From positions 620,001 to 684,000 of the forward strand of contig JBLDXI010000026.1 of the NCBI GenBank assembly GCA_047495785.1: a stretch of 64,000 nt of DNA. The letters run 5' to 3'. This document shows, piece by piece, positions 8,362 through 53,054 of the stretch. A model generated the notes under the pieces. The model was not told the DNA's origin, made no database searches, and saw only the letters and a list, made by a program, of their open reading frames with translations. This stretch comes from Lepidodermella squamata (Eukaryota; Animalia; Gastrotricha). A program made the position numbers and the translations under genes. Each line of letters opens with the position of its first letter. Position 1 is the stretch's first letter.

Positions 8362-9884
8362 ATGCTACTATCATATTATTTGTTATTTCCTGCCATTTAC
8401 GGCTTATTCCAGTTAGCTGTGGCTCTTAGGCAAGGGCCTAATGTCAACTTTGGCTATGAAACTTATCCGGGTGATTATCCATATGTGGCACGGTTGGTGG
8501 TTAAATTGCCAGGGTCATATCGGTACAATAACTGTGGCGGTGTGCTGATTCATCAAAGCTGGGTGATCACAACCGCGCATTGCCTTGGATCAACGCGCGA
8601 TAACCGATTCGCAACAGGGTGAGTACATACATTTATTTAGACTACTTTTGCATTATAATTTTATTCCAAATTTATTTTATTTGTTTTTGTTTTAATTTTA
8701 TTTCAATTTTAACTTGGAAAAGGACCGATTTTTCCAGTACCGTAACGCGGGGCAACAATAAAGGGCGGAGCCATATTTTAAAATATTTAATTTCGGAAAA
8801 TTTTGAATTCCTGAACTAGGCAGCAAAGATAATTTTTCAGCGGCCTGCAAATTTGGCTATTCTATGAATTTTTACCTAATTTTTAGGTAATTAAAAGCAT
8901 ATTAGCGAATGAATATTCCAGGGTCATTTGCATGAAACCGCCAAAGTACTAATTAACCTAATTATTCTCAGATTTGTCAAATATTTGCCAAATATCCTTA
9001 GGCTTAATTATGAACAGTTAATTAATTAATTAATTAATTAATACCGGCCGTTTTAAAAAGCCAAAAAATATATTTATTTATTGCCTTATTTTCTACAAAC
9101 CAAAACACAAAATTCTCACCTGCGTTGCAAAGACAAAAGAATCCAAGGTCACCTGTCCTAGATTATCTCGCGTTACGGTTATAAACTATTTTTTTCTAGA
9201 GTTGCAATTTATTTTGCGGATTACGATGCAACAATTTATCCTGAGGAGGACGAATTCATGCAAACTTTTTACTTAGCTTCGAGATTTCGCAATGTCATCA
9301 TTCATCCTCAATATGACCCATCGACGCTCGACTTCAATTTCGCTCTCATCAAATTGCCGAGCCCTGTTCGAAATCTGACCTTGGCAATCCTGCCCAAACC
9401 GTGGACGTGTTCTCGAAATTATTATTTGACAAAATCCGGAATCATCGACAAATGCCAGCGGGTCAAGGCGCTCGGATGGGGCATAACCAGTTAGCGAAAG
9501 TTTTAATTTTAATTTTCAAAATTTTAAATTTCAATTTTAGGCAGTGGCGAATCTTTTGATTCCGATGAATTGATGCAGGAAGTTCCTCTGCGAGTTCACT
9601 CCTTTGTCGATTGTCTGACACACCCTACTAGAATAAATCTTGGCGACTTTAATCCGTCAAAAATTTGCCTCGGCGGCGATTCTTCTTCTGGCCAGGACAG
9701 TTGTGATCGAGATTCTGGCGGGCCGATTATTTGCTCGAATCACCGAGGAAGTGAAGGTTACCTGGTTGGGCTGATTTCTTACGGTGCTAATGGAGCCCAT
9801 TGCGGTACGAGAACGTTTCCAAGTATTGGCGCCAGAATTTGTGCAGCAATGCATTGGATAAACGAAGTCATAACAAAATATTAA
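8362..9884 (+). CDS. G3: secreted trypsin-fold (S1) protein with Asp102->Asn and Gly193->Arg; probable serine-protease homolog
   Basis: Exons 8362-8618, 9200-9489, 9541-9884 (phases 2, 1). Signal peptide, PYVARL, CGGVLI...TTAHC, TLDFNFALIKL (Asn where DIAL Asp is expected), GWG, DSCDRDSGGP, ARICAAMHWI. Confidence 0.9.
8739..9179. mobile_element. Possible degenerate MITE in G3 intron 1
   Basis: 11-bp inverted termini ACCGTAACGCG (8739-8749) and CGCGTTACGGT (9169-9179) bracket most of an intron that is long for this window. No clean target-site duplication. Confidence 0.4.
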
Positions 9885-11541
9885 AATGTAAAATGCATCA
9901 AAGTTTGATAATTTTTATTGCTGTGCATTCGAAAATTGGGACAGAATCAAATAAAATGGATTTTTTAAGGTAATTAAAATAGAATTTCAGCTCATTTGCG
10001 AGACACGAGACACCATATCAGCTAACTTTGAGTTCTGCATGACATGAAAGTACCTATAACTGGCTGGATATATTTGGGTTAATTATTGGCTGTTTTACCT
10101 TTTCTCCGTGATATTATTGATCTCAGTATGCGATGTGGACGTTGCGATATGCAATGGACGTTAAACGAAATGAACGCGTGAGAAAAATCGGCGATATTCT
10201 CATAGAGAAATGGACCTTTTGTCGTTCGTTCCATACGTCCACTGTAAGTCGTAATAACGTAAAAGCTATCAAATTTCTGTGTAAATCCGTTGCGAAATGA
10301 TGCGGAAGTAATTATTATCTTTCACTAAAAATAAAACTTTGACCCCTAATAAGATTTCGGAGTAATTATAGGTAATTCCAGCGACAATGGACGTTTTAAT
10401 CTTAGGTATATTCTTCATTTTCCTCATTTTTGATTAAATGTTCGCTGTGATCATTCAGCAGTATAATCGGATAATGGACGTACGAGGAAAGAATCGGCGA
10501 CATTGCAGAACAGATTCATGGCGAGGAATGGACCTTTCTTGTCAGTGTTCTATACGTCCACTGTATAGCCGTAAATCACGCACACACGTACAAGTTATTG
10601 GATTTCTGTATAAGACATCGGCGAAATAAGTGACACAGAAATAATCAGGTTTCCCTATTGAGCGGATCTTCAAATTTAACCTGATTTTTTTTATTACCGT
10701 GAAGCGCGGTATAATTGCGGTTTGCGGAAGCTGGCTTTCTCGCATAATTTTCCCCGGTCTATTGGCATTTGTCTTCAATAAATTCAAGGCGATTACGGTA
10801 GTAATCGCTTTACAGAAGCAATTACAATCAGTGCGACCTCGTATCTCATGTTGAGAATCTCTAAAATCTTTGCAATTATAATGCAACCCAAAGTCCCAAT
10901 AGTAAAGCCCAATAGTAATCGACTACCTATTAAATTACCCTATATTTAAAAAATCATATAGGGTGATTACAACCCCAGGGTTTCTAAAAGGCATATATCC
11001 GCGCTGGGAAATGGTATAAATTCGGTAAAAATGGATAAATAAAGGTGTCTCGTCTCTCGTCGGGTTGGTTATGAGCTAGGACCCGTTTTATGAGACTGTC
11101 ACCAAACCGCACTAAAATGTCATCAGAATCGATTTGATGCACGAAGTGATCCGTGACCAAACAAAATGCACATACGGGTTGATCTTACCCTGCTCATGAA
11201 CTTGGCCTCTGATAGCGGATTCCTTATCCATTCTCGATATAACCGCTCAGATGTGACATCAGGTAAGGTCACGTGACCTTCAACTTGACACTGGATTTTT
11301 CTCCATTATAACCGTAAGTTATAAATCTAATGGGGCTTTCGAATCCCTGTTTCGAATTGTTTTCTTTATCGAAATAGCGCGTGCAGTTAGAGAAAGAAAA
11401 ATAAAAGAAGTTCACAAAAATATTTGAAGCTTTAATGGGAATACACAATACTAATCTGCACTCTGGTTCGGATTTCACAGCAATTTTTTGCAAAATTCGA
11501 CTCAAATGGCGAATCTTGAAACTTGCGGTGGCCAAAAAATT

Positions 11542-11685
11542 CCGTAGAAGGCGAATTCGATGCGCATCAATTTAATGAGGTGTTTTAAGAAGTTGAAGAA
11601 TTTCAAGCATTCTTTTGCCAATGGGACTCCTCAATTTCTTGAAACTCCTCATTTAATTGATGCGCATCGAATTCGCCTTCTGCGG
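11542..11685. repeat. Near-perfect palindrome / fold-back element (about 144 bp)
   Basis: CCGTAGAAGGCGAATTCGATGCGCATCAATTTAATGAGG pairs with CCTCATTTAATTGATGCGCATCGAATTCGCCTTCTGCGG (2 mismatches in 39), and pairing continues inward. Confidence 0.9.
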
Positions 11686-12515
11686 ACTGCGGAATTCTTT
11701 GGGCACCTTACAGCACTTTACGCTGAATTTAGGGATGATTAATTTTAAATTATGCTGATCAATAATAAAATCCTTGAAAGTGGTTTTAGGTCCATTGAAA
11801 ATTCCAAAATTTGGTTCTGCGAACAGGCAAACAGGTTCCGCTAAAAATTAAGACCCTACAATTTTTGTATCTTTTTCTGGCTCATCAATCTGTTTGAGTC
11901 ACAGGTTTGCTTTATTTCTCTCCAAAATTCAATCGTTCACCTGGCGCCCTTCCACCAGTCAAATTAACAGTTTCAATTGTTGTTTCATATCCTAATTGTG
12001 TGTTTCTCAGCTGTTTTCCATGAATACCTTCACCCATTTTGCATTTTTGAAACAACAAAAGAGAATTTTCTGGATAGCACGCCATACCTTTGCTCTTTTG
12101 GTTAAAAGATAGGTGGTCACCCTTAAGCCTTAAGCTGATAACCGGCTTATTTCAACAGGTCACTATCATCTTCGTAGCTATAGTGGGCGATGGCTAATGC
12201 TATCGTTAATTTAATCATGGAGTAATAATTGTTGAGTAATGATGACCTGAAGAAAACGGCTCTTATACTTATTCTACTGGCCAGCCACTGGTCACCCACA
12301 CTAAGATGATTGTAACGTGTGACTTGAATCTAATTATCCACGAATTTTACGCCTTTTCGCCGCCAGCATACGTATATCAGATGCAATTAAAAATTTGTTT
12401 TCATCTTTTAACCAACAACACGTGCCTGCATTATATTATTGAAAAATTTAGCGTAGAGTAGAATTTTGATTGGCAATCTAATAAAGGCAACAAAAATTTA
12501 CTTCCCGGCGATAAC

Positions 12516-17818: not shown

Positions 17819-18467
17819 TCAAGAGCCGGCGGAATTTCTCTGGAAACTATTGGATTTGAACAACAACCAACAGAGTCCGGTTCCTTGTATGCCTCAGAGT
17901 TATAGCTGAGGCTCTTGATTTTCTTCGTAGTCTGTAGCGATGAATTCTGTTTTGTGAAACAGCCGAATTTATATGTTATTAACGTTTATTGATCTACCTC
18001 AATAAAATTGGCAATTATTTTTTGTGTCAAAAATTGTGGTGTTTTTTATTTATCTCAACACTTGGCTTTTTGAAGGCTATTAGATACAAAAGGCGGCCAA
18101 TTTGTTATAACGCATAGATAGTTAATGAGTTAGCCATCGTCTAGCATTGTTACGCGCCAGCCAGTTGATGTTATCGCCATATGGCCGGGAAACCAAATTA
18201 AATTAAAAAACACAACGAATTTTAACACGTGGCTATGACGCAGCCTGATGCTTAAGGCCACGATATACTGATGTCAAGTATTTGACGCCCTCTCACGCTC
18301 GTGCGGCATGTACTTCATAATGATGATTACTGCGTCTCGACCGGCGCGGCGAAGTGAGTAATCGTCGACTAGGTGCAAATAGCAAAAAAACCAGCGGCGA
18401 CGACAGAATATTCAACAAACGAGCGCAGCACAGTTCTGGTCGGTCATTACTTCTATAACGAATCTTA

Positions 18468-23729: not shown

Positions 23730-25228
23730 ATGAGTGTTGACCACATAATACTGGCTATGTTGTACTCGTTAGGACTTATTCTATTGTGCTCTGCAATCAC
23801 CGTCGGACAATTACCGCCTTTTGAAAAGGAATCTCATTGTCGGCAGGAAAAGGACACCGGGCCTTGCCGGGCGTTTATCGCTAGGTACTACTACGACCCA
23901 ATCATCCAGAACTGTCGGCAGATGATCTACGGAGGCTGTGATGGAAATCGAAATCTCTTCCTTACCTTAGCTGACTGTATAAGTGCATGCTCTGGAGTTA
24001 AGGAAGACGGCACCTCGTTCAACGATGTTCGAAGTATACCAGCTAGTACTGATCTATCAATTGAGAAGAGATGCATGAGGCCACCTTCTTCTGGCTGCTC
24101 GCCTTATGCTTATATTATGCTACAGAAATTTTACGTAAATCTGGCGACTGGGCAGTGTGAGGGCGATTTTTACTGCAGTGTTGACCATCAATTCGTTGGG
24201 TTTGATACCATGCTGGAATGCACCCTTCGATGTACCAAAGTCAACGAAACTGCGGCCTTGAGCAATTCATATCTGCCCGTCAATGACAGACCTTGGATTC
24301 CGTCATCAGGTAAAAGGATTGATTCCCAATTTCGTCGATTGCCCTCAACTTCTTTCCTATTTTTTCAGACAATTCATTAGGAAATTACTTCCGACTCCGA
24401 TATTATTGCGCATCGCCAATCCCGATGTCAATTGGAATCAAAACGTTAACACCGAGAGATTGCGCAAATTATTGTGACGCTGATATGAATTGTAATGGAT
24501 TCACGTACTTTGTCGATACTAACGCTTGCGAGCTGCAAAGTAACTGCACCCAATCGAATAACATAACGAAATCCAGACTACCAGCTACAGCTCAATCGTG
24601 GAAAAAATTAATTCAAATTTACCCGACAACCCAACCGACTACAACGGTCGAATTCGCAACTGATGCCGATACTTTGGAGTACAACACGATTAATTACCAA
24701 CCTCTGACGGCACATTGTGGTCGCGAGTTCATTTCTTGGGTCATGGTTAACAAAGCTCACGACTGCATGAACTCCTGTGAGATGCGCCAGCCTGAATGTT
24801 CGAGTTTTTCATACTATATAGCAACTGGGAAGTGTTCCCTAAGAACCAACTGTTCGGCTTTAACTTCTTCGCCGAAATCACTGGGCGATGAGGCTTATTT
24901 GAGAATCGCACCTATCACAACATCTAAAGCGACTACTACATCTACAACAGCACCAAAGCCTTTGGTTACTATTCAAACTCGAATCTCAACAGTTAGTAGT
25001 AGAACCTTTGTCGCAGTTACGTATCTCTGCGATACGTCTTCGATAATAAAAGGAATGGCCATGGTTGGAACTTCAACGACTTGTGCGGAATTATGTGCGG
25101 CGGAACGGTTTAGCTGCTTGGCCTTCACGTATATCGCGAACTCGAAAAGGTGCGATCTTCATGCTACGTGCTCGCCCCGGAGTGAAGCTCCTCCCCTCTC
25201 GGCCGCGTCTTACATTAGAATCGACTAA
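23730..25228 (+). CDS. G9: signal peptide + canonical Kunitz (P1 Arg) + long-loop Kunitz-like + three PAN/Apple domains
   Basis: Exons 23730-24309 and 24369 (or 24381)-25228 (phase 1). CRQEKDTGPCRAF...YGGCDGNRNLF...CISAC; CMRPPSSGC...CTLRC; three CxxxC...CxxF[ST]Y...CxL repeats separated by Thr-rich linkers; AATAAA at 25250. Confidence 0.9.
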
Positions 25229-25684
25229 GCTAATCCCATTTATTTTGTTAATAAAAAATGGCACGGAGATGCAATCTTTTTCACTATCACGTGTTTGCCA
25301 ACACGTCGAGCCGGAGTTATCAGGAGTTAATTAGTTTTTTTCATCTCCTTGAGATTAAACATAGAGGAGTTGATTGGTTTTTTTCTAGACATGCGATAAG
25401 CGCTCTCACTTGGCTACACGTGTAGAAAAAGCGCGGCATAAATTAAAGGTTTTTCACACTCGTGAGTATAATAAAGAAGCGCGCATGTCCGACAACATTA
25501 AAGCCACCTTAATACACTGACAAGTTAGCATGTGTATTATGCATGTGTTAATTCTAAATGGCACCGGCCAATAATGCCGCCGTTGTCTGTTTAACATGGC
25601 AAACTATCTGTTGTAGCTGGTCAAGAAGTTGACAGCTTTTTTGTTGCCACCTTAAGTTTTTCACTGCCCACGCGGCTGTTTACA

Positions 25685-27557: not shown

Positions 27558-30500
27558 ATGAATCTTGTTCTGTTAACTCTCCTTCTCTGCAAAGCCAGTT
27601 TTTCTTCTGCAGTAGGCGTGGAAGCTGTAAAAAACGAATTCCCTTTCTTGGTAAAATAAATATTAGTTTTTTATTATTTTCGTATTAATTTTCGGGTTTA
27701 AAGGTGAGATTGGAAATTTCTTATAGCCCTTCAAAGCATTTCGCGAACTGCGGAGCCGTCATTTTGTCGGATAATTTTCTACTGACAGCCGCCCATTGCT
27801 TTTTCCAAAATGGTTTGAGGGCTTCGAGGTTAGTTCCCTCTTCTTCATTTCGAACCGCATTACAAAACAAATCATTCTAGGGCTCTATTGAATTTCGGAA
27901 ATCATGACACAAATATCATCAATGAACCTGGTGAATTTTACAAAACGCTCGACCTCGTTTACGGCCTTAACGTTATGATTCATCCGAAATTCAACTCGAG
28001 TTCTTTTTACAACTACGATTTCGCTTTATTGAGGCTGTACGACGACCAACGGTTGACAAATTACACTTCGATGACTGCAGGCGCGGTCACGCTGCCTAGT
28101 TACAACAAATGCAGCACGATTTACTCACCGTTAACGCGAGAAGTCGATACCTGTGTCGGGGTTATTGTTGTTGGCTGGTCGATAACCGGTAGATCTGTCT
28201 CGAAAACTCTGAAAAAGAGCCCCATGCCTGTTCAACCGTTTGAAAACTGCGAAAATTCAACCCGATCTTATTCAGAGGCGAAAACTTGCATTGGAAATGC
28301 GAAAGCTGGTCGAATCCCGGATGACGAAGCCTGCCCGGCGTTATGCACTCGGAATTCCCTGTCTTCTTCGCCCTTCCTATTGGGCCTATCATCCTATGGT
28401 AGCGGAAAATGTGGAACATTAGACGCGGATGAGTCATTATCAGTATATGCAAGAGTTTGTGCCGGCCTTCCATGGATTAGGAAACACATCGGAGGAGAAA
28501 TTGAGCCAAACTTTGTCAAACAAAGATTAGTTGAAACTTCTAGCGTGGCGCAACCAGATACAACTACGCCAGCGACTAGAGCGACTCCTAATTTCTGGCC
28601 AAATTTCTCTGCTCGGAAACTTTTGATCGAGGCTAATCACACCTGGAATTTCTTCGGGGAAACCATTCGGCCAGTTGTTACCCAGCCTGCTATGCCAGCA
28701 CTTTTTGCTCAGTTTTTAAGGCCAGTTACCACGAGATTGCCGATTCCTGAGGCCACAGTTGCTCCAAAGCCTCAAAACGACCTGGCATCACCTTCTCAGC
28801 CGAAAGGAAGATGCCTAATTCCTTTGATTAAAGACGTCGACTATGGCAACTGTGGTTTTGCAACCCGTTTTACTTATAACACGACTATGAAGCAGTGCAT
28901 TCAATTTGTGGGCTGTTACAATCCTATGGGGAACAATTTCCCTTCACTGCCCGATTGTATCAGAGAATGCAATGTCAACATCGATTATGCCGTTATCCTT
29001 GCAATGCTGACCTCGGAAAATAACGACTTGCCACGGTCAAATGCGATTGATGACGCGGCAATTGTTCCTAATAACACCGAATCCCCGAAAATTCCGGTTT
29101 GTACGTTGTACCCTGTTGTAGGGGTTGATTTCGGGACTTGCCAGAGCGGTCAGTCGATCTCCAAGCGGTACTTTTGGAATAAAGCTACCGGGAAATGCGT
29201 CGCTTTCCCCGGATGTCCAAGTGATAACGGCAATAACTTTGAAAATCTGGATGAGTGCATCAAGTTCTGCCGCCCTCAGTCTGAAAGTAAGTCTCAAGAC
29301 TCATGATTTTTTTCAATCTAAAGTTTATTGCTATTTAGGATGCAGGAAGAGCATGCTGTTGGAAATGGATTTCGGCAAAAGCTGTGAAAATTCCGAGCGG
29401 TACTACTACAACACTGCCACGAATCAATGCTACGGCTTTACAGACTGTGTATCAGCTGATAGCGAGCCCACGAGCTTCTCTACAAAATCTGAGTGTGATT
29501 TTGAGTGCGTCTTCCGGGCAGACCCTGAAGAGCTCAAATCCTCAACTGATTCAGCCATGCTAATCCCCGCAACCGTTACTCCCCAATCCGAGCTATTTCA
29601 ATTATTAACGAGGCAACTTTTGACAAACCCGACCACATCCCCAACTACAACAACTGTTGCGACTACAACGGTTGTAAAAAGTGTTGAGCCTGACCCAAGA
29701 TGTGCCCTCGTCCCTAAACGAGGCTCAGACTTTGGAAACTGCACCGGTGACAGTTCCTTAGTACGGTCCTACTGGAATCGAGCTAGGTACAAGTGTCTCC
29801 TGTTCCGAGGCTGTGAAAATCCTGACGGTAATAACTGGGACGATCTTGACGAGTGCAAAACAAAATGCGAAACTGGTGCGCTCGAAGACCTAAAAGCGTC
29901 AGAAGGCAACATTGAATTGATTGATAGACGTAAGTTTGGTTTCCTATATAATGAATTCCTTTAATGAACTGAATAGGCTGCTCTACTCCTTTGGTGCGAA
30001 ATGTTGACTACGGTGGTTGTGAGAACTCTATTCGTTACATGTACAACGCAGCAGCGAAGCGATGCGGAAAATTCATGGGCTGCTACAACCCTGGCGGTGG
30101 CAATAACTTTAACAGCCTCGAGCAATGCGGCGAATTTTGCATGACGAGCGAGAAACGATTGGATGATTCAGATGAACAGCCGCTTGACATCGATTGCATG
30201 ACGGCTCCACAGCAAAGTTTCGACTTCGGGACATGCAAAACGGTGCATAGGCGTTACTACTACAGCGCAACGAAGAATCAATGCATTTCGTTCCTTGGAT
30301 GTCCAAAAATCAGTATTTGGAACAATTTCGCTACAAGGGAAGATTGTATAAGGGGATGCATGGCAAATTGCACGACAACTGTTCTTGCCAAATCAAAAGT
30401 GACGAGATCGTTTGTAACAACCACTGCAGTTCAAACCACAACTTCTGATATTCCTTCAACTTCAACAACTGAACCCTCTACAACCACTACAACGAAAGCT

Positions 30501-32253: not shown

Positions 32254-32569
32254 TAAATTCGACGATGAATTATACTTCGCCCCAGTGAATTGTGAATTCT
32301 TTTCTTGAATAAAAAAAATAAATTATTATCATCTATCGCCCTTGAAAATTCCCTCATTTTTTTTAATTTAAACTCAGGTTTGTGGCTATGTAATTATTTA
32401 TAATAATGGAGAAAATAAACGGAGATGATGTGAAAAGGTTAATTGACTTGTTTTCTCGCAGCCGTTATAATATACCCGCCTGTCTGAGTATATTGCAGCC
32501 AACTATTATATAATTATCACACGAAACAAAAAACATAAGGTTTAAGGGCATTGACTTTTAATCGCACTA

Positions 32570-34201: not shown

Positions 34202-36643
34202 ATGATGAAGGCAAAATTTTTAATGGCCATGCTGGTACTAGTTTTCAGATGGGTGCCTGAAACTACGGCTGCTGCGAGATATTTGGACTACACATCACCG
34301 ACCGACCCTCAGGAGCATCCTTGGCTTGTAATAAAAATTTCGAATTTTTTTAAAAAATTTTCAAAACTTTTTAAAGGCCCAACTTCGAATTTCTTTCATC
34401 AACAAACCGCCTAATATTTGCTCCGGAGCGCTGATTTCAGCCAGATTAATTTTAACCGCCGCCCATTGCCTGTCGAAAGACGGAATTTCGGCATCTAGGT
34501 TAATTTTATTGATTTCAAGGCTGATTTCAGCTTTCATCCTGTTATAGGATCAACGTCATTCTAGGCAGTCGCAATTCAAGCCGCCTTAACGAGCCGGGTA
34601 CAATCAATGTCACCCTGGTTGCTAATGTCCTCTCAGTCGCGATCCATCCTAATTTTCAAGTTTTCGGGAGTGGGTACAAGAACGATTTTGCCGTAGTAGC
34701 CCTGCAGAACACGGTTAACCTGACCTCGGCGATTTACCCACTACGGCTGCCTCAGGATGACGTCTGCGAGGCGCAGGGTGACTACCAGGCTAATATTCAA
34801 GACTTCGATTCATGCCTCATGGCTAGTGCTGTAGGCTGGGGCGTGACTTCTAACGGAACTCGGTCTGATACGCCTCGTAAGACTAACATCGCCATGCGGG
34901 CCTACGATTTCTGCACCGATTTCATGTCTGTATCCACCCTGGAATTCTCGCCTGATCTTATGTGTGCCGGCGGCAGTTCAGACGAGGATGATCAGCGGAA
35001 TACGTGCCCTGGCGACGATGGCGGGCCGTTGATTTGTATATCTGGCCCGGCTAATTACCAGTTTTTGCTCGGGGTCTACTCGTATGGCGACCTGCCGTGC
35101 GGGGCGCCGATGGGCGGCGACTACCCGGCCGTCTACGCCAGGGTGTGTGCGGTTAATAACTGGTTGAAAATGATGTTTAATTTATTCCCGGCCGTTTCGA
35201 CGCTGAACCGGATTCCGGAGGCGAATTTTACAACTTCGACTCAAAGCACGGCTCAACCGACTGGGCAGACGCTGGGTATCCTAGACCTAGGCACTACTCG
35301 CCGCCCTACAACTACTACAACAGCATGTACGACCTAGTTTTCAAAAATGAATTGAATTTAGATTATATTTTATCAGCTACGGGAAAGACGGAAGAGGATA
35401 TTTTTGATGTTTTAAATCCGACTACGACTACAGTAAGACCAAGGACCAGAACGACGACAACATCAACGACGACAACTACAACTGCAGCGACTACAACAAG
35501 TGGTATTTATACATACCGTATTTGTTCCTATAAGGCCGGGCTACTAAAATTTCAACCTCGATATTTTGAAATTTTCAAAAAATAATTTTGGTGAATCGTT
35601 TATTTTTGATGTTTTCGTACCGACTTGACTCCTCAACCCTGGGCTACTATTAGTGATGGGCGATCGTTAGTGGATCCGAGCCGATCTAATATCTATAACC
35701 CCTAAGACCTGGGCTAATATTGGAGATGAGAGATTATTGGCGACTTGGTTACTATTGGAACAAATATTGGAGGTGAATAATGTGGGACGTGTTCGCATCA
35801 AGTTGTAGATCGTCCACATTCCAGATGAGGGCAACAAGAGAAATGGCAAAAAATCATCAAAAAACGAAGAGGTTTCCCGGATTATTCCAATAATTTCGCG
35901 CGCAAACCATGAGTTATTTGAATCTATGGTGCAGATCTGACCCCGAAATTCTCAAGTTATTCTTCGAAAATCGATTAAATTTCGAAATTCGCGAGCTCAT
36001 GGCGATATTTTTTATTTAATCTTGGTCGTCCAAATGCGTGTTTGCTTCCTTCTATAATTTTTTTAATTATTTTGATCATAACCCTGAATATCGGTCAAAA
36101 TGTATGTTGTATTTTTCGCAAAATCCTGGTTTTATCCGGATTTTTCTCATTTAACTTCGAAGTTACGCCAGAGGCTTCAACAACTCCGTCGGCAGCGACG
36201 ACTCAAATTCCAATAAATACGACTACACGAGCTTCAACAACTACAACAAGGATAAATGGTAAAATGGAGATTCTAACCAAAAAAAATTAATTTTTTGATT
36301 ATTCAATATAGTTATTGTGCCGATAAATGCTCCCCCATCTCCCCCTATTCGTCCAACGTCAAGTTAGTCTTAGTCTAATGGTTTCGTCGTCGAAACTGCC
36401 TTTCTTTTTCATTTTTTAGGATGTGCAAAGCCGATACCATCCGAGCCAATCATCTGCACCCGCGCATTTTCGACCCGCTACTACTACAACACAGCCCGAA
36501 AAACGTGTGAATCCTACCGAGGCTGCTTGTTATCCGCTAAGGAAGAAGCCGAAGTGCTCGACAACGACTTCTCATCACTTGTTTCGTGCCGCGTCGCCTG
36601 CGCCACCGCCTCAAGTTCCATCATTAACACCGATTACCGATAA
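34202..36643 (+). CDS. G13: secreted trypsin-fold pseudoprotease (Ser195->Asp) + Thr-rich stalk + one C-terminal Kunitz-like domain
   Basis: Exons 34202-34327, 34377-34498, 34548-35326, 35377-35502, 36163-36258, 36420-36643. HPWL|AQL, CSGALI...TAAHC, NDFAVVAL, CPGDDGGP. The last exon, in a frame not in the ORF track, reads CAKPIPSEPIICTRAFSTRYYYNTARKTCESYRGC...NDFSSLVSCRVAC. AATAAA at 36646. Confidence 0.85.
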
Positions 36644-42600: not shown

Positions 42601-43654
42601 TTTTTATACAATAAATTTTCTGCATAAATTAGAATAAATAAAAATAAATTTAAGCCGGCATTTTCAATTTGCCTTAATCCTTTTTTATATCCTCACTTTT
42701 TCGGCCGTTTTTTAATCCTGACTTACCTATTGTCCACTATGGTCGGAAAAATTGAGAAGAGATCCACTTTAATTTTCTGCGGATTTTCATAATCTTGCGC
42801 TTGAAAATTGACAGCGGCTGTACAATCTGAATAGCCAGAAAACGGAAGCGCCAAGTATTGTTGTCAGCTTTTGCTGACAAAAGGCGGCATTGTCATCCTC
42901 GTTTCACTCGAGACGCGCTCGCGCTGTTGAAAATTTATAATTATTTTCTGCGAGATGTATCCTAAACTAGAATATTATATATTATGTGGGACACAAAGAG
43001 GCGATTTATATGCGCGTATAATATATATTAAATCTACCTGTTCAAATTATTAGCCGCGCTAAATGAGCCGGCTATTGTTTTATCATCTGTTACGCACTTG
43101 ATGCGTATAATATTATTATTTATTAAAATTGGCCTCATCATCATGGGCAAAAATTGCCGCACACTAGTAGCGTCTTCTAATAACCGCGTTTTATATAGCA
43201 CATAGGACGTTGTTGCTTGTTTGTTGTTCGATGGCTCGCGTTATCCATCGCTCATGTCTCTACTCAAAACTCTACTCACTCATTTTCTTCACTCGCGAGC
43301 CGCGCATCAAATTTTGAAATAATATTTTTAAGGCAGCGCGAAATCAACTCGCCGCAATTTTTATTACTGCGAAGCACGCTAAAAATGTGCAATAATTACA
43401 ACGTATATATATATATATACGCAGCGTTTTGTCTCACTTCTATCATCATACCAGGGTTTATTTCTCACCTCTCCGCGTTTGCGGCTGCCAAATTTACGAA
43501 GCCAACAAATTTAGTTATTTTTCACACTTTTTCAGCTTTCAGCAATCATCAATTTTTTAATACGGTTTTTTCCTACCTTATAATAGAGCTGTTATCAATA
43601 AATTTGAGAGTTATGGCTTAGTTAACTTTTATATTACATCGAACCGATACGAAA

Positions 43655-46600
43655 ATGTCAAACGGCGAAATTTCTGCCCCGCAAGTGGCGCAGAAAAACG
43701 TTATTGATACAACGCCAAATCCTAACCCGTCCGTTATCCGTCGCCATTTCGAGCATGTTGAAACCGAACTAGCGGTCCCAGTTTCCGTTGGATCTCCGGC
43801 GAATAGCCAGCGATCGAAAGGCCCAGCCCCGCCACCACCTGTTGCTCCAAAACAGGAATACACCGAGGATAATTACATCTACAACGATTCATCATCGATG
43901 CCGCAAGCCGAGGTGATTTCGAGCCAAAGACCTAGTGGCGGCAATGATTTGGCTAAAAAGCCTGCTCCTGTTCTTCCGCCTCGAAGTAGCACGTCAGGCG
44001 AGAATCCGACTCCGAAGCCAAATCCTTACCGGACAAAGCGGCAGCAGAGTACGAACGACGACGGGCCTGGGATGTTACCTGCAGCAACAATTGATACAAC
44101 GCCAAATCCTAACCCTTCATCAATCCGGAGATTTTTCGAGAAATCCGGCCCGACCGACGTGAAGTGCCACGCTTGTGGCGAGCCGGTCTATCCAACAGAA
44201 CGGCTATGCCTCACGGAAGATGTTTGCTATCATAAAGCTTGTTTCCGATGCGCGGTCTGCAGCCAGCATTTGACCATCAAAACCTTCGTGCGGAACCCAG
44301 TCGATCGAACAGACGCGGCTGTTTACTGCCGGAAGCACGTGCCGCGGATTGTTGATGCAAAGTTCGATGAACATGCGATAGGAATCCGCGGGGCGTTGAA
44401 TGCTCAACGCGTGTTGAAGAAGGGCCAGGTCGATTTGTCGCGCCATCACTTTGACGCGAGGAATTTACTACTACAACGGGCGCTGAAGGCTGCGAGTAAC
44501 CATCGAATGGCGAACGGCGAGATGGAGAGCTCGTCGTCGATCGAGGGCGACCAGTCCCCGCAACAGGCGTTGAGGTCAAGTCGGTTTATGGAGAGTGGCC
44601 AGCAGGAAAGTTGGGCGCCGAAGGTTGGCATCGAAGCTTTACACATAAAAACAGCGCTAGACGCGCAGAAGAACCGGTCTAAAGGCGGGAAAATGACCAT
44701 GTCGAAACATCACTACCTACCAGATTTCGTTCACAAGAAGCAGAACGAGATTCTGGAGGCTCAGGAAGAACTCGAGTTGGTGCAACGCCGCGAGGAAGAT
44801 GCCTTACTGCGCCAGTTCCAGGAGGAAAGAAATTTCGAGGAGGTTCAAATCCAACGCGGCATCGAGTCTGAATGGGAAGACGAGTTGCGTATTTTAACCC
44901 AAAAGTACGACAAATTATTGTCGAAAAAGGGCCAGAATAAGCAGGCTCTTATGACGCAATTCGAGGAGGAGAAGCGGCAACTACGGCAGCAAATGGATGA
45001 AAAATTGATCGCTACCCAACGAACTGCTACGATTCGGCTACGTCACAAGGAGCAGGAGGAGACTTCGAAGATGATCGAACGTCATGGTAGGCAGATGTTG
45101 GAACTTCTCTGGCACAAGCAACGTGAGGTTGAGAACGAGATTCAGCAGGAATTGATGGTGCCGGAGATGAGTCAGGAAATGACGTCGCACCAGTCGCAAC
45201 TCATCGAAAACGGCCCGGATTCAATGGTTATGTTCGACATGAGTGAGATCAGTTTGATAAGCCAAAACAACGCAGCTGCCGCGATTGCAGCGGCCGAGGA
45301 GCGTCAGTCGCAGAATTCGGCGTTATCCGGAGATTACGACGATGCTACAACGTCAATGCAGAAGGGCGATGTTTTGGAGGAAGAAACTGAAATGGTGCGA
45401 GTTTTGAACAACATCGAAGGCGCCTCTGCAGCCCCGCCACCACCGCCCCACCCACCATCTTGCCGAAAATGCGATCTTTTCATCGATTCTTCAGTCTTCG
45501 CCCAACTCGATAGTTATGTTCTCGAGGTTGCGCAAACCGACCCGGAGAGCTTCACTAAATTAGTCCATAAACTGATGAAACCTTGTCTAACCGACCTTGA
45601 GAAGGCCAGGGCTATTTTCCGATGGATTACCGCTAAAGATTTGAATGTGATTGACTTCTCTCAAATGCCAGCCGCTAACCAGAGTGACACCCCACTCGGC
45701 ATTCTGCGATCCATCAAAATGGGGGTCGAGACCTACCATACGTTATTCCGAAGACTTTGCTCATACGCTGGTTTGAATTGCGTTGAAATCCGCGGCCACT
45801 CGAAAAGTGTTGGCTACGAGCCGGGGATGCACATCGAACCCGGCCAGTTTCTCAACACCTGGAACGCGGTACTGCTAGACGGAGACTGGCGGTTGGTTCA
45901 ATGCAACTGGGGCGCGAGGCATTTGGTTTTGAACAAGGACCAAAATCAGGCGAATCATGGGTCTAGTGAGACTAGCTCAATACCATCCGATCCGTCCAGC
46001 TCGCCGAAAAAGCCGGAGGATAGCATTCGTTACCAACAGGACGAGCATTACTTCCTCACCGATCCTGAGGACTTCATCACAGAGTTCTGGCCATTCGACC
46101 CGAAGTGGCAATTACTCCACGAGCCGATTACATTGGACGAATTTGAGAAATTGCCGTTCGTCCGATCGGTTTTCTTCCATTACGGCATGGCGTTTGTCGA
46201 CGATATGCGAGCGGTGGCTGATGCGGACGAGTGCGGCGGGGCTCAAGTCAGGATAACAGTCGACCCAGCCATAGCTCAGGACATAGTTTTCCACTACCAG
46301 TTACGCTTCGCGGATCGAACAATGTCGACCGAGACATCTTACCGCGGCATCGCGTTGGAACGATTCGTTTTCCAGTCGATAAATGGCAATCAAATTTTGT
46401 ATAAGGTCTTCGTGCCGACTGTTGGCGAGTATTTCCTCGAGGTGTTTGCGAACCGTCTACCAGCCAGCCAATCTGATGGCGCTTCGATGAGTTCGAGTCG
46501 TTCGAGCGGCATTCACGCACCGCAGCAGCCTTTCCGACTGAAATGCGCGTGCAAATTCCGGATTCGTTGCCCGAAAATCAGCCAGAAAATGCACCCCTTA

Positions 46601-47641
46601 CCGGCTTGCTCCCCCGGCGAGTGGGGCCCAGCTAAGGCTCTACGTCACTTCGGCCTCCAGCCTCTAACCCACGCATTAGGAGCGTTTGATTGCGCTGACC
46701 ATGTTCAAATTGCCTTCGCAGTCCCTCAATTACCATCGGTAATGGAAAGTCCCGTCGAAGAGGAGCGAGGAGGTCTCAGCCGACAATCTAGCTCTTCAAT
46801 GCATACGAATCCTTACGATCTTCACGCCAGGCTTCATATGAACAACATTGAAGATCGACTCTTGGAAAAGTTTGTTACATCTTGGCGAGATCAGGGCAAG
46901 GACGGTCGGGAACAACTTGTAGTCCGGGTCTCCTTCCCACAGGCCGGTCAATATGGCTTGGATATCTACGCGAGAAAGTACCCCGAGGCGAATTTCGCCC
47001 ATGCCTGTAAGTACTTGATCAACGTGAGATCAGTTGCTAGACCCGACCCAGCTATCTCGCCAATCGCTGGCGCATCCCCTGTTGCTATGTCGGATAAATT
47101 CGGACCAACTGCAGCATTTGGTGAGCTTGGTCTGAAAGCTGTCAGCCACAAGGATACTTCCACCGTGATTTTGAAATCAGCAAAACCTGTCGACATCGAA
47201 TTTAGCTTTAAGAAACCGTTGGATTTTGCGTTTCACTTCATGCGAGCGGCGACCTTCGAGGATTTGCGAAATCGATGCCAAATGTTGGGGCCTCGCGAGG
47301 CTGGTAAAGGCAAGGTGATTTTCCGGCTTGATATCGGCGAACCTGGTCACTTCCTACTTGCGATCTACGCGAGAAAATCCGACCAGAACTCGCAGGGCGG
47401 CAAACCGTCGTTATTGGCAATGTCGAATGTGTTCAACTACCACATTATCTGCACAATGCCGCAACAAGTTTCCGGGAATAGCTTCCAAATGACGGCGATG
47501 ACGTCGAGTTTAAGCGACGATGCAGCTTCGAGCAGCAGTGGAACGCCCCGAAGTGTCAACAGCCCCATCAGTCAACCGCCTGTTCCGCCTAGCAACAGGC
47601 CTGCCATCACTAGCCGGTCTACACTGGCCGTGGCGCGGTGA
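43655..47641 (+). CDS. Hillarin-like protein: LIM domain, coiled coil, KY/transglutaminase-like domain (1328 aa, single coding exon)
   Basis: LIM CHAC...YHKACFRCAVC...YCRKH; E/Q/K/R-rich coiled coil; AIFRWIT, LFRRLCSYAGL, GHSKSVGYEPG, NTWNAV, WRLVQCNWGA, EHYFLTDP as in hillarin/KY-family proteins; C-terminal GEYFLEVFA / GQYGLDIYA / GHFLLAIYA repeats. Confidence 0.9.
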   Translation: MSNGEISAPQVAQKNVIDTTPNPNPSVIRRHFEHVETELAVPVSVGSPANSQRSKGPAPPPPVAPKQEYTEDNYIYNDSSSMPQAEVISSQRPSGGNDLAKKPAPVLPPRSSTSGENPTPKPNPYRTKRQQSTNDDGPGMLPAATIDTTPNPNPSSIRRFFEKSGPTDVKCHACGEPVYPTERLCLTEDVCYHKACFRCAVCSQHLTIKTFVRNPVDRTDAAVYCRKHVPRIVDAKFDEHAIGIRGALNAQRVLKKGQVDLSRHHFDARNLLLQRALKAASNHRMANGEMESSSSIEGDQSPQQALRSSRFMESGQQESWAPKVGIEALHIKTALDAQKNRSKGGKMTMSKHHYLPDFVHKKQNEILEAQEELELVQRREEDALLRQFQEERNFEEVQIQRGIESEWEDELRILTQKYDKLLSKKGQNKQALMTQFEEEKRQLRQQMDEKLIATQRTATIRLRHKEQEETSKMIERHGRQMLELLWHKQREVENEIQQELMVPEMSQEMTSHQSQLIENGPDSMVMFDMSEISLISQNNAAAAIAAAEERQSQNSALSGDYDDATTSMQKGDVLEEETEMVRVLNNIEGASAAPPPPPHPPSCRKCDLFIDSSVFAQLDSYVLEVAQTDPESFTKLVHKLMKPCLTDLEKARAIFRWITAKDLNVIDFSQMPAANQSDTPLGILRSIKMGVETYHTLFRRLCSYAGLNCVEIRGHSKSVGYEPGMHIEPGQFLNTWNAVLLDGDWRLVQCNWGARHLVLNKDQNQANHGSSETSSIPSDPSSSPKKPEDSIRYQQDEHYFLTDPEDFITEFWPFDPKWQLLHEPITLDEFEKLPFVRSVFFHYGMAFVDDMRAVADADECGGAQVRITVDPAIAQDIVFHYQLRFADRTMSTETSYRGIALERFVFQSINGNQILYKVFVPTVGEYFLEVFANRLPASQSDGASMSSSRSSGIHAPQQPFRLKCACKFRIRCPKISQKMHPLPACSPGEWGPAKALRHFGLQPLTHALGAFDCADHVQIAFAVPQLPSVMESPVEEERGGLSRQSSSSMHTNPYDLHARLHMNNIEDRLLEKFVTSWRDQGKDGREQLVVRVSFPQAGQYGLDIYARKYPEANFAHACKYLINVRSVARPDPAISPIAGASPVAMSDKFGPTAAFGELGLKAVSHKDTSTVILKSAKPVDIEFSFKKPLDFAFHFMRAATFEDLRNRCQMLGPREAGKGKVIFRLDIGEPGHFLLAIYARKSDQNSQGGKPSLLAMSNVFNYHIICTMPQQVSGNSFQMTAMTSSLSDDAASSSSGTPRSVNSPISQPPVPPSNRPAITSRSTLAVAR

Positions 47642-48038
47642 AAAATGCAATAATTAACACGCTATTGAACAATTCCTCGGTCTGCTCTACCAGTGTAGCG
47701 ATGATTTTTTGTTATTTCTATGTTTCTCAGTGTTACTTGACGCTCATTTTTCTATATTGTAGATGTTGCCCTAAACTGAAACAAACGCTTAGAAAAAATT
47801 ACCTTCTGCCCATATTTTCTTTTTACTGCGGTTTATCCATTTTTTCTTCGCTATTATCTATCCTTTTACTGCGCCAAGTTGAGAAACTAAACGTTTTTAG
47901 ATCACAATATCATCGTATATATATGCTCATTGTGCGGACGATTATAATTTTAAAGATAAAACAAATTTATTATGGTATGAAATTGCGATGAAAACAAAAT
48001 AAAATGTTTTATTTGGTTACGAAAATCGCGTTTTTCTA

Positions 48039-50291
48039 TTACCAGAGTGAACACCGTAGTCCATTTGCCATTTTAGCCTTACCGGAACAATGAAATGCTC
48101 TCAGAAAATCATTGTTGCCATTCAGCCTAGCGTTGACTCGAACTTCAGGAGGCGAGTGAACATCGACCTCAAGTATGTAGGAAGCAGCCTGTGGAGTTCT
48201 GATGTAGCACGAAAGCTGGGCAAAAGATAGGAAAAAGAGCTGCTCGGAGGTGAAATAGCTGATCTGATCGCTTTCCATTTCTGTTTTACTGTCATTTAGG
48301 TGAAGTCGAAAGGCGTCAAGAGCTACTTTCAAGCCGCCATCATCTGCGAGATTTTCGGACAAGGTTTGCTCCCCATTGACAGACTTACCGTTGATGGCGT
48401 AAGAGCTGAATTTATCAATGTAACAGTTTGTTTTGTTGAGGAATTCAGATTTCGACTCTGAATCCCACCAGTCTCTCAAATTGCCGTTTTTGTCATACTG
48501 GCGGCCTCGAAAATCGAATCCATGAGTCACCTGGAAATATGTTCCTTAAACTGATTGGGGAAATGTCGCCTCAATTACCTCATGGCCGATGATGCTTCCG
48601 ATTCCAGCAAAATTAACTGCTTGGGGTAGTCCTTCATCGTCACGGTAGAATGGCTTCCGTAAAATCGCGGCTGGTAACATGACAGCGTTGTAAGATGGGT
48701 CATAATACGCGTTTACTTCCAAAGAATTGAAGGTTATCAAGGTGGGGTCTGAGATCCTCCTCAAATTCTAGAAGTAAAGTCGTTGAAAGGTTAAGATTAG
48801 GTTAGTCCGTCAGGTTTATAGCCTTACTGTATAACTCAGCTGTCTTCTCCATCGCTGAATGTATATACTGTTTTGTACGTAGCTATCTCCAATATTTATC
48901 ACACGAAATTTAGCTTCCATTGCAGTTAGATTTAGAATCCTGCTATCGTAACCCACTTTCGTGGACATCGCATCCAATTTTTCGATAGCAAGCCTTCTAA
49001 CTTCATCATCCATCCATGTTGCTCGCTGCAGCCTCGCTCGAAAAGCTGATCTTATCTTGGCGATCATTTCCGCGGTCCTGTTTTTCGTCTTAGCATCGAA
49101 ATGCCTTTGGATGAACATGTAACTGAGGGGCTCATTCATATTCTCGGCAGTATCGCTAACGCAGGTCTTCCACCTTTCAGGCAAACCCTGTCGACCGACT
49201 AAAGCTTCGTTCAACTTATCGGCCACAGCTTTGACTACGCCACCAAGAGCAGGCGCTTGCTCAGATATAGTTCGATAAACCAAATAATTTTGCAGAATTT
49301 TTCGACCCTTTGTTGAGTTTACATACTCGCTAACTAAGGTGCTGAGTTTAACGAAGTAAGATAAACCATACATTACGATTTTATCACCCTCACCCACTGA
49401 GACTCCTGCAGGTCTAAAAACGTCGTTCAAGAATTCGGTCCAATTCAAATAATTGAACCTATTTTGTAAGAAGGAGACATTGGCTTTGAAGTAAGTTGAG
49501 CTTCTATCATTTGACTGAGCTAAAGTTATCATGGCCTCTGCCCTTTTCTTTTCAAATTCTACAACGTCTATAATGCTCGAATTTTCTGATGGAACTTTAT
49601 TTTGCAGAGCTAGTTTGCTGAAAGAGTACAGCTCATCGACTAAAGAAATGAGATTCGGACTTGTAGAGACTGATCTGTTGAAGTAAAGATTACGAGCATT
49701 ATTCCCTAACAACAGAGATCCCTGTTGTAGGAGGACAACGTAATTTGATACGTTCTTGATATCTCTAGAAACTGACAGGGAAAACAGCCCACCGGAGCCG
49801 AAATTATGGCGCTTGATCAACGCAGAAGTTAGCGACCAATTTGAGGGTAATTCATCAGTGGAATTCAGGAATATTCCGCCGCCCAGATCTACCAATTTTC
49901 TCAGTGAAGCTAAGCTCGAGTTAGATATTTTAGATTCTGCTAAGCAAGACGCGTAGTAACGGCGAGTCTTTTGGAGGACCGAATCATTCTTTGAGGTAGA
50001 ATTTCTGTCCTCTAAGATTTGTTTCATCAGATTTGTTACTTCCTCATTCGCCAGTGTTAATTGGCTCAAACTCGTACGACCGGTAGGTAGAACGCTTTTT
50101 TTGACGAACCCACCGCATGCATAGCTGTAAAAGTCTTCGCATGGATCGATGGAAAGATCTGTTTTGTTTACCACATCTTGGAGAAGTCGATCGCAAGCCT
50201 CTGATGAGCAAGTTTTCCCAGCTGCAAGTCCATTTCCATGATGAATTAGCAAAACGGAGAAAAATTGAATGAAAAAGTCAGAGCTAAGCAT
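48039..50291 (-). CDS. M13 neprilysin/ECE-like zinc endopeptidase, probably secreted (about 714 aa)
   Basis: Exons 50291-48828, 48767-48579, 48530-48039 (2145 nt). DPCEDFYSYACG, VNAYY, GHE|VTHGFD (HExxH across an intron), ENLAD, HSPPEVRVN, C-terminal CSLW. Short hydrophobic N-terminus with no cytoplasmic tail. Confidence 0.93.
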
Positions 50292-50943
50292 TATCAGACG
50301 AACATGTTGAAGTTAGTGTTAAGAGTTCATGCAGTACTGGAACAATTGGGTTTTGGCGCTACTATTATTTTATATCACACCTAACACATTTTTTTCATCT
50401 TCTTGTTAAGCTTCTCTTTCTCAATGAAAGAAAACGAGCGTTTCAGTCACTAAATTAATCAGAGCGCTTTATTACTAGAGTTTGTGGATTAATTACTTTC
50501 TTACAAAGCTGGTTAATCTCAGCAAATTACGATCTAGATTTTTCGGAGTAAACAAATGACAACTACGTTATTTTCCTTAACATCCTCACCCTCATGCAGC
50601 CCATTATGATAAACCGTTTTGTAGCTTAATTTGCCTCTCATTTGCTTGTTATTGAGATTTGATGCGCATCTATGAGATAAAACGCGGTTTAATGAAGAGT
50701 CGTAAAAGCATAGTATTATTCGTGTGTTTGCGCCAATTAGCCGCGGATTCTAATTGTTTTTACATGTATATAATAATTCATGAGCTGAGGAGCGTCATTT
50801 TTCATCGCCTTACATGCTTGTTTATATATACTTCATCGGGAACCGGTAGTCACCAACTCACGAGTCGGTACAAAAATGTCAACTGACATTTGAGACTGAA
50901 CCATACCCGTTGGTGCTAAAAGATTTGACATTCTAAGCAAACA

Positions 50944-53054
50944 ATGAAGCTTAATTGCTCCATACTTCTATTCCTATTACTCGTGGGCCATTCAATGGCT
51001 CTCTCTGAGAAAAATAAGGAGATTTACGGGTTGGAAAAACCTCCTATCACTCAATCTCAGTCGCAAGAGTTCCCGTGGCTCGTGAGTTGATATTAGACCT
51101 CTAAATTCTATTGAAGCTAATAACATTTTATAGGCACGACTGACTTTCAATTTGAAAGAGCGCCAAGTACCCGAATATTGCGCTGGAACGCTTATTTCTG
51201 AAAATTGGCTGCTCACCTCGGCTCAATGCATCACTCGTGCTCAACTACTTGATGCCATCAAGTAAGACTGTTGAAACCATTCTATTACTTTAAATGAAAC
51301 CGTTTCTCATTAGCTATACAGTTCAGTTTGGCAGCATTATCGAGCAAAGCTCTAGAACGTATACCTTTAACCTGTCAAACATATTTATCCACCCCAACTT
51401 TAAATCGGGGGCTGACTTGAGCTTCGACTTCACCATAATCAAGCTACCTCAGCCCGTAGAGCTGAAAAACAATGTTAAGCCCGCGGAACTCCCTAGTCGA
51501 GATTTATGCACCAATAACGCAGATTTCGAACCCTTTTCATCGGGCTATGACAACTGTCTCAGTTCTGTAACTGCTGGATGGTCAATCGACGATATCAGCC
51601 CTCCTATTCCTATCATGAAAATGGCTCAAAGCCTTCTTGAGTTTGAAAAATGCTCCGAAGAGGGCGAAACCAGCAGCGAAAATAGGTTTTCTCCCTCTAA
51701 ATTATGCGCTGGGGCAAATAACGAAGACATCGACGACCAATGCTTGCAACTTCCTGCTAATCCTATGGTTTGTACTACAACCCCAACTGGGGAAGAATCC
51801 GGCAAGATTTTGATCGGAATTTACTCATATGGCGAATGTGGAAAACGAAGCACTCAGCAAACTTTGAGTGTCTTTGCAAGAATCTGCGGTGTATTGGACT
51901 GGATCGAGAGTCTTATCTCAGCCCCAGAGCCAAAATCAATCCCTGAGAACCGCAAATGCGATGAATCAATCGATGACACCCCTGCTCCACCTTACTGCAA
52001 GGAAGCAAGTATTCGCTACGTTTTCAGCAAGTCGCTTGGAGGCTGTATTCAACTCCTCAGCTGTTCCGAAGGGCACGAGAAAGGTTTCGAGAATGAGGAA
52101 CAGTGCAAGAAAGCGTGCACAGGGCAATCCTCAAAAGAAATCATTCCGGTTTTCAACGACGAGTCAACTGAATTGAAACCTTCCACTGATCCTGTGAATC
52201 GGTGTTTTGCCGAGCTGAAGAGGGACAGCGATTACGGAAGTTGCGAGCAAGCCTATCGATTCTACTTCAGCCAGATAAACAGCCGATGCATCCGCTACCC
52301 AGGGTGTGTGAATAATGATTTGGCTGCCAATAATTTTGGGACGGAGGAAGAATGCATGTCGGCCTGTCAGTTGATCTACAAAATTGACCCGCTAACCAAC
52401 GACCCTCCGCCATCTGTAATTGAAAGTGGAGCCGCGGTCATTCCTCAAAACCCAGAGCAGAGAAGCAGGGCTCTAGTCCGACAACTCCTCCCGCCATATC
52501 GAACACTGTTCTCCCCTCCGAAAAACAATCCAAGTAAACTCTGACATTTTCCTGAACAATCTTGCCCAATTTTCTGTTTCTTAGGGTGCCATCTCCCGTT
52601 GGTCAATGGTGTTGATTTCGGCGAATGTCCCAAACCGACAAGCAGTTGGCGGTTCTACTGGAACAGATCGTTAGGACGATGCTTAGGTTTTCATGGTTGT
52701 TCGAATGTTCCTCGAAACAACTGGGACTCTGAAGGTGAATGTCTCAAAAATTGCCGTGACTCAGACTTGGTAGTGTCTCTCGATGATGCGGAGCCTGTTT
52801 TAGTCAGCATTCGAGGTCCTGCTAGATGCTCAATGCAGCTAATCAATGGTTTGGATTTCGGCGGCTGTGGAAAGGAGACGCGGTATCTCTACAGCATATC
52901 TCTTCAGGCGTGTATAAAATTCAGAGGCTGCGTTAACCCGGATGGCGGTAACAACTTTGCTTCGAGACGTGAATGCGAGTACGTTTGCGAAGTCGCAAGA
53001 TCACGCAAAAAAGGCATCCAAGTCAAATCAATAATCAAAAACTTTTTGAGATAA
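50944..53054 (+). CDS. G14: secreted trypsin-fold pseudoprotease (His57->Gln, Ser195 lost) + four Kunitz-like domains
   Basis: Exons 50944-51081, 51134-51261, 51314-52533, 52585-53054. FPWL|ARL, CAGTLI...TSAQC, FDFTIIKL, DQCLQLPANP; Kunitz-like CDES...CKKAC and three D[FY]G types (SDYGSC, VDFGEC, LDFGGC); AATAAA at 53085. Confidence 0.87.

Follow-up and report, generated by a model that had tools for sequence, protein, structure and literature searches.

Four trypsin-fold genes with broken catalytic sites, probable members of a lineage-specific branch of secreted pseudoproteases, in the gastrotrich Lepidodermella squamata

A 64,000-nucleotide stretch of the genome of the gastrotrich Lepidodermella squamata (assembly GCA_047495785.1, contig JBLDXI010000026.1, positions 620,001 to 684,000 of the forward strand; hereafter the window) carries four genes, designated G3, G11, G13 and G14, that encode trypsin-fold (family S1) domains with altered catalytic sites. 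With a probability that we put at about 75%, these four genes encode secreted, disulfide-stabilised, non-catalytic S1 homologues (pseudoproteases) that belong to a lineage-specific branch of the S1 family. Each combines an S1 fold with the replacement of at least one residue of the catalytic triad and an intact gene model, which is how a serine-protease homologue (SPH) is defined. As far as can be read from the sequences, the branch is marked by a long Cys128-Cys136 loop, the absence of an Arg/Lys-Ile16 activation site, a phase-2 intron and, in many members, C-terminal repeats of a binding type.

Results

The window is eukaryotic DNA of around 40% G+C with short introns, and the bulk of it consists of tandem genes for secreted Kunitz and PAN domain proteins on the plus strand. 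A six-frame scan with a family profile built from the S1 pieces of G3, G11, G13 and G14 returned exactly these four S1 domains, everything else being at noise level. Database searches and fold prediction were run on single exons, and exons were joined in local scripts solely for frame checks, alignment and tree building.

Chymotrypsin numbering was fixed by HMMER alignment to solved proteases. The first-pass annotation of this DNA had claimed that all four catalytic sites are broken, and the alignment to trypsin confirmed a broken site in every one of them. The triad at positions 57, 102 and 195 reads His/Asn/Ser in G3, His/Asp/none (Glu or deleted) in G11, His/Asp/Asp in G13 and Gln/Asp/Pro in G14 (codons in Table 1). 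The Asn102 codon of G3 is read directly in the window, and the best Protein Data Bank matches of the exon that holds it (...LDFNFALIKL) were the engineered rat trypsin D102N structures 1trm/2trm, with the Asn in column 102. HMMER aligned DSCDRDSGGP of the same gene on DSCNGDSGGP, giving Gly193 to Arg as described earlier and leaving Asp189, Asp194 and Ser195 intact; His57 and Ser214-x-Gly216 are kept as well. CPGDDGGP of G13 was aligned by HMMER on CNGDSGGP of kallikrein-4, in agreement with the reported replacement of Ser195 by Asp. The double lesion described for G14 (His57 to Gln, Ser195 to Pro) was likewise recovered, CLQLPANPMVC being placed by HMMER on CKGDSGGPLVC of plasma kallikrein with Gln193, Leu194 and Pro195.

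The earlier description of G11 as having lost the GDSGGP segment needs rewording: no recognisable GDSGGP is present, but the alignments show a substituted rather than a deleted loop. In HMMER and in two MAFFT alignments, IPDDEACPALC lies column for column on C-x-GDSGGP-x-x-C, which gives Ile191, Asp193, Asp194, Glu195 and a cysteine at 197 in place of 191. A deletion could fit the cysteine count equally well, with the Cys of EAC taken as Cys191, a deletion of six residues and three residues left before Cys201. Under either reading G11 has neither Ser195 nor Gly193.

As the annotation had stated, an R/K-IVGG activation site is absent from all four domains. At P1, the equivalent of residue 15, G3 carries Asn, G11 Ser, G13 Tyr (directly preceded by Arg) and G14 Glu (preceded by Lys at P2). 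A relative with an intact triad, P0020 (see below), likewise has no R/K-IVGG, so the missing site is a trait of the clade and not a sign of inactivation. The predicted signal-peptide cut of G11 (..SFSS/AVGV.., exon 27558-27650) adjoins the canonical Ile16 position, and signal peptidase by itself may generate the mature S1 N-terminus of this protein. Having no nucleophile, G11, G13 and G14 are predicted to be incapable of serine-protease chemistry. G3 is expected to show trace activity at most, because of Asn102, the Arg193 at the oxyanion-hole position and the lack of an Ile16 N-terminus.

All four domains carry 10 cysteines, which fall at the positions of five trypsin disulfides (42-58, 136-201, 168-182, 191-220 and 128-232); in G11 the partner of Cys220 falls in column 197, not 191, in the HMMER and MAFFT alignments. 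The HP, GW and SYG motifs are also kept throughout. An LPxxxxC...DxC segment, reported earlier as an extra element, is indeed common to the four domains, but its cysteines are not additional. We rejected an extra disulfide at this place: the two cysteines correspond in the alignments to Cys128 and Cys136 of trypsin, and every domain also has the partner residues, Cys232 and Cys201. The hallmark of the branch is instead the length of the Cys128-Cys136 loop, which exceeds that of other S1 domains by 6-9 residues.

Pfam PF00089 (Trypsin) matched G13 at 3e-21, G14 at 1.5e-10 and exon 3 of G3 at 3.6e-11. G11 had no Pfam Trypsin match at E<=0.01, and its phmmer search of the Protein Data Bank returned plasma kallikrein at 1.2e-6. 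Structure prediction covered G11, and for G3, G13 and G14 the fold is deduced from sequence. An AlphaFold2 model of the exon-3 piece of G11 reached a predicted local distance difference test score (pLDDT) of 79.6, with 61 in the 141-150 block. In a Foldseek search with this model, 500 of the 500 counted matches had E<=0.001, and among the 50 matches listed all were S1 protease chains (probability 1.00, template modelling score 0.58-0.69).

The gene models of G3, G11, G13 and G14 each open on an ATG followed by a hydrophobic signal peptide, and GT..AG ends and reading frame are kept at every placed intron. The earlier statement that the frames are intact thus stands, with open frames of 296 codons in G3, 345 in G13 and 651 in G14 and with G11 checked over its 278-codon S1 part. 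The phase-2 intron noted after the AHC-region exon was found in all four genes, around 11 residues past Cys58 and with GT..AG ends; a phase-0 intron past a PW-L motif is common to G11, G13 and G14. The G14 intron at 52534-52584 (51 bases) is in-frame and takes out a stop codon. AATAAA occurs at 9950 for G3, and a poly-A signal was not found within 400 bases of the in-frame stop of G13. Downstream of that stop (35338-36640) come Thr-rich open frames at 35181-35582 and, at 36374-36640, an exon with a Kunitz-like domain (Pfam 2e-5); G13 may splice onto these to acquire a mucin-like linker and a Kunitz-like tail.

The Kunitz-like tails of G11 and G14 were recognised from Pfam PF00014 matches and the six-cysteine pattern, and many of the copies score weakly. 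The frame of the large G11 exon stays open to 29303 and reaches the first two of these domains (28812-28970 and 29100-29270), more of which follow up to around 32220 in other frames or exons. A D[FY]GxC signature marks most of the Kunitz-like domains at 28812-33952 and 51957-52988, which follow the S1 heads of G11 and G14 or belong to the intervening gene; in domains with this signature the P1-equivalent residue is highly variable (G, Q, T, E, K, N, D, L, A or P). The canonical Kunitz domains at 2319, 5770, 21049 and 23838 have Arg/Thr at P1. We also considered whether G10, which encodes PAN domains, and G11 form a single gene resembling hepatocyte growth factor (HGF), and rejected this model, G11 having its own start codon and signal peptide.

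A word-based protein search for relatives with a G13 exon gave no match at 1e-5, and a language-model atlas search returned generic trypsin clusters only. With a profile of the window S1 domains as query, HMMER retrieved 24,786 S1 proteins from 1.84 billion representatives. Eight representatives stood out with per-domain scores of 102-176 bits, all others scoring 85 or less. All eight come from European Nucleotide Archive metagenome contigs, and six of them join the window domains in the tree.

In a maximum-likelihood tree of 52 domains, G3, G11, G13, G14 and these six relatives form one clade with 99/98 support. The proposal that the four window domains are one local family therefore holds in that they group together within a single clade, but it has to be widened: six metagenome proteins lie inside the clade too, and G3 sits in a separate sub-branch. 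G3 groups with P0057 and P0098 (94/87), and G11 plus G14 are sister to G13 plus P0009 (93/83). Neither the exclusive monophyly of the four window domains (approximately unbiased (AU) test, p=0.20) nor a grouping of the nine dead members with P0020 outside (AU p=0.51) is rejected, and topology by itself can therefore not count the losses.

Nine of the ten clade members are non-canonical, the sole intact triad being that of P0020, which carries ankyrin repeats. P0009 has Phe/Asn/Trp at 57/102/195 and a Kunitz-like tail. P0098 has His/Asn/Ser, the same as G3, and a short C-terminal extension in which no Pfam domain was found. P0057 has Glu/Tyr/Val and 13 sushi repeats, P0086 has Gln at 195 and is likewise associated with sushi, and P0115, with Asn57 and Ala195, shows no additional domain. 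The dead members mostly keep the G-D-x-G-x-P frame and Asp194, with residue 195 alone varying, which suggests that the scaffold of the 191-201 loop is still constrained in them.

The contig of P0009 (locus L001) bears the phase-2 intron as in the window, and Kunitz and PAN genes lie upstream. Its neighbours match those of the window at 30-45% identity, from which we conclude that the cluster layout is common to another organism. Alleles of the P0009 gene on four metagenome contigs differ by 1-2 synonymous bases, too few for a ratio of nonsynonymous to synonymous substitution rates (dN/dS). The G3-like relative P0098/P0156 (His57, Asn102, Ser195) is intronless and stands beside a CLCA-like gene (L003, 10001-11035); the G3 sub-branch thus holds both intron-bearing and intronless members.

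The distribution of the retained residues bears on the history of the losses. His57 and Ser195 survive on the G3 branch, and His57 and Asp102 in G11 and G13, so their common ancestor had a full triad; and since the G3 branch lacks Asp102 and G11 and G13 lack Ser195, at least two independent lesions must have occurred. The repeated loss proposed in the first-pass annotation is upheld to this extent. Four losses are not required, as the states at residue 195 could follow from one older loss and subsequent drift. We propose that Asp102 changed to Asn on the G3 branch, starting from an ancestor with the full triad, that Ser195 would have been lost separately on the Kunitz-tailed branch, and that later erosion may account for changes such as His57 to Gln in G14. 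Four separate, independent losses, as the annotation implied, would fit the different residue 195 in each gene (Ser in G3, Glu or deleted in G11, Asp in G13, Pro in G14) and the Trp195 of the sister protein P0009. Yet G11, G13, G14 and P0009 make up one sub-branch, for which a single loss with drift at the freed position fits too, and the tree that unites all nine dead members is as likely as the best tree; we regard four losses as rather unlikely.

Sequencing reads were examined at the G3 lesions. Contigs of run X1 are identical to the window over 9080-9572 and 9663-9926, so that both lesion codons are covered. AAT at 9336 and CGA at 9708 are unchanged in X1, and GAT at 9336, which would have restored Asp102, was not seen. 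Within 9573-9662 a second haplotype of G3 exon 3 in X1 differs by seven single-nucleotide polymorphisms (90 bases, around 8%), with none in the flanking exons, and this interval is a locally very divergent allele. The seven comprise five synonymous differences and two conservative replacements (Met to Leu and Asp to Glu); at 23-24% synonymous sites, the chance of at least five synonymous changes among seven is around 0.01. Small as the sample is, the pattern points to purifying selection. Directly downstream of G3, at 10841-11842, the contig depth in X1 climbs from around 100 to a maximum of 37,000 and rearranged joints are numerous; this segment looks like a very high-copy repeat or satellite.

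Other genes placed in the window are an intronless gene related to kyphoscoliosis peptidase (KY), a metallopeptidase gene and a pair of zinc-finger exons, which are listed with the exons of the four S1 genes in Table 1.

Table 1. Exons of the four S1 genes and other genes placed in the window (positions in the window).
Feature	Position	Strand	Content
G3 exon 1	8362..8618	+	signal peptide to His57 region (CAT 8578-8580); phase-2 GT donor
G3 exon 2	9200..9489	+	Asn102 (AAT 9336-9338), lengthened Cys128-Cys136 loop
G3 exon 3	9541..9884	+	Asp189 (GAC 9696-9698), Arg193 (CGA 9708-9710), Ser195 (TCT 9714-9716), stop TAA
G11 exon 1	27558..27650	+	signal peptide plus AVGVEAVKNEFPFL; phase-0 donor
G11 exon 2	27704..27828	+	Cys42 to His57 (CAT 27794-27796); phase-2 donor GTTAGT
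G11 large exon, S1 part	27881..28496	+	Asp102 (28017-28019), degenerate 191-201 loop IPDDEACPALC (28314-28346)
G13 exon 1	34202..34327	+	signal peptide ... AARYLDY ... HPWL; phase-0 donor
G13 exon 2	34377..34498	+	Cys42 to His57 (34464-34466); phase-2 donor
G13 large exon	34548..35337	+	Asp102 (34684-34686), Asn189, Asp195 (GAT 35017-35019), Thr-rich tail, in-frame TAG
G14 exon 1	50944..51081	+	signal peptide ... NKEIYGLE ... FPWL; phase-0 donor
G14 exon 2	51134..51261	+	Cys42 to Gln57 (CAA 51224-51226); phase-2 donor GTAAGA
G14 large exon	51314..52533	+	Asp102 (51426-51428), Asp189, Gln193-Leu194-Pro195 (51747-51755; Pro195 CCT 51753-51755), two Kunitz-like domains
G14 last exon	52585..53054	+	two further Kunitz-like domains, stop TAA
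KY-like gene	43622..47638	+	intronless, kyphoscoliosis-peptidase/LTD-1-like, one 1339-codon open frame; 50% G+C vs around 40% in the surroundings; LIM and KY-like immunoglobulin-like domains (Pfam PF00412, PF23265)
M13 metallopeptidase gene	48042..50312	-	neprilysin-like, flanked by the KY-like gene and G14; no more than 23-29% identity to its nearest named relatives, from bivalves and ticks
C4 zinc-finger exons	58402..58743 and 62954..63313	-	tandem pair, nuclear-receptor type (Pfam PF00105)

Discussion

The view that canonical catalysis was lost while the S1 fold was kept, already put forward in the first-pass annotation, is supported by the ten cysteines, the GW, SYG and HP motifs, the G11 model, the allele pattern of G3 and the same layout at the P0009 locus. 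By analogy, the rigid S1 scaffold and the remnant substrate cleft would serve as a protein-binding surface, which in G11 and G14 would be tethered to a string of Kunitz-like domains, the genes standing within a cluster for secreted Kunitz and PAN proteins.

Several points weigh against this interpretation. The binding role is argued by analogy. G3 and P0098 both combine Asn102 with a retained His57 and Ser195, which could reflect a residual catalytic role. The public-run search with the G3 region returned one DNA run (X1) and no RNA run, and the splice models are predictions. X1, the sole public read set, may moreover be the assembly's own sample and is then not independent. No close orthologue of the window genes was found, the best reaching 40% identity.

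G3, together with P0098, might accordingly be a real if weak or unusual protease in which the His57-Ser195 pair is backed by Asn102. Besides the two catalytic residues, G3 retains Asp189, Asp194 and Ser214-x-Gly216, the His/Asn102/Ser combination recurs in the distant relative P0098 as though it were maintained, and D102N trypsin is measurably active, the more so at high pH (PMC12018205). However, the same substitution lowers kcat around 10^4-fold (PMC12018205), which makes for a poor enzyme, and G3 adds to it an Arg193 at the oxyanion-hole position and the lack of an Ile16-type N-terminus; none of the triad residues survives in P0057, the remaining member of the sub-branch. We consider a working protease unlikely. 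That at least one of the four genes is a decaying pseudogene is very improbable in our judgement. The search that returned no RNA run, the strong degeneration of the active site in G11 and G14, the failure of G11 to match Pfam Trypsin and the stop of G13 without a poly-A signal would all suit decay. They are opposed by the long open frames (in G11 the S1 part, with the large exon open to 29303), canonical GT..AG ends at all introns, all ten structural cysteines in every copy, the synonymous excess between the G3 alleles and an architecture kept in another organism. Assembly errors or rare alleles as the source of the lesions are largely refuted. In G3 a single base separates Asn102 from Asp and Arg193 from Gly, but the X1 contigs are exact over both codons with no variant listed, the lesions of G11, G13 and G14 need at least two base changes or cover several residues, and equivalent lesions occur in the relatives.

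A more specific version of the pseudoprotease interpretation has Kunitz-like modules dock onto the dead S1 head, which would be their built-in partner, whether they lie on the same chain or are encoded by the neighbouring Kunitz and PAN genes. If so, the Kunitz-like repeats would plug the crippled cleft as BPTI does in trypsin, and a non-covalent hook-and-loop arrangement would assemble an extracellular material or complex. This is a speculative extension, which we hold to be quite improbable. In a lesser variant, His57, Asp102, Asp194 and Asp195 of G13 might together make up a metal site such as that of MamO, a repurposed protease (PMC4794232).

For annotation, the consequence is that G3, G11, G13 and G14 should not be counted as proteases. 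More broadly, dead protease look-alikes are a recurring route by which animals arrive at binding proteins, and the present case is a lineage-specific branch of S1 domains where catalysis was given up by nine of the ten members sampled, with all structural disulfides kept, several of them being fused to arrays of Kunitz-like (inhibitor-type) or sushi domains. Literature searches found no paper on a protein that carries a Kunitz-like array behind a dead S1 head, and a chain that joins a protease-like head to inhibitor-like repeats merits a biochemical look.

Invertebrate SPHs, such as the clip-domain SPHs and masquerade of insects, share with the window genes a secreted S1 fold in which at least one triad residue is replaced, and they usually have Gly at position 195. 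The residue at 195 in the present branch is instead Asp, Pro, Glu or Trp. Unlike the clip-domain SPHs of arthropods, all four window genes are without a clip domain, their S1 domain being preceded by just the signal peptide and another 10-25 residues, and they are further set apart from SPHs by the tails of Kunitz-like arrays and by forming a separate branch with a longer 128-136 loop. SPHs are numerous in invertebrate genomes, with 125 non-catalytic homologues among 269 S1 genes in a beetle (PMC11172050). They are thought to bind rather than cut. Dead S1 homologues being common in invertebrates, the cluster described here is a clean and fairly ordinary case.

Three other systems lend themselves to comparison. 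HGF has Gln in place of His57 and a replaced Ser195, and its dead S1 domain serves receptor binding. HGF and macrophage-stimulating protein resemble G14 in having a dead S1 domain with His57 changed to Gln and Ser195 replaced, and PAN domains are encoded nearby in the window. Unlike them, the window genes show no kringle and no activation cleavage site, and the PAN domains (24323-27086) end in a stop in neighbouring genes, with G11 starting from its own signal peptide. The engineered rat trypsin D102N has Asn at the same position as G3 and also keeps His57 and Ser195, whereas G3 is natural, has Arg193 in addition and is without an Ile16 N-terminus. The third is the metagenome protein P0009, which is 40% identical to G13 and has the phase-2 intron, a dead triad, a Kunitz-like tail with the D[FY]..C pattern and Kunitz and PAN neighbours at its locus; it differs in coming from another organism, in its triad residues and in encoding the stretch from signal peptide to His57 region without an intervening intron.

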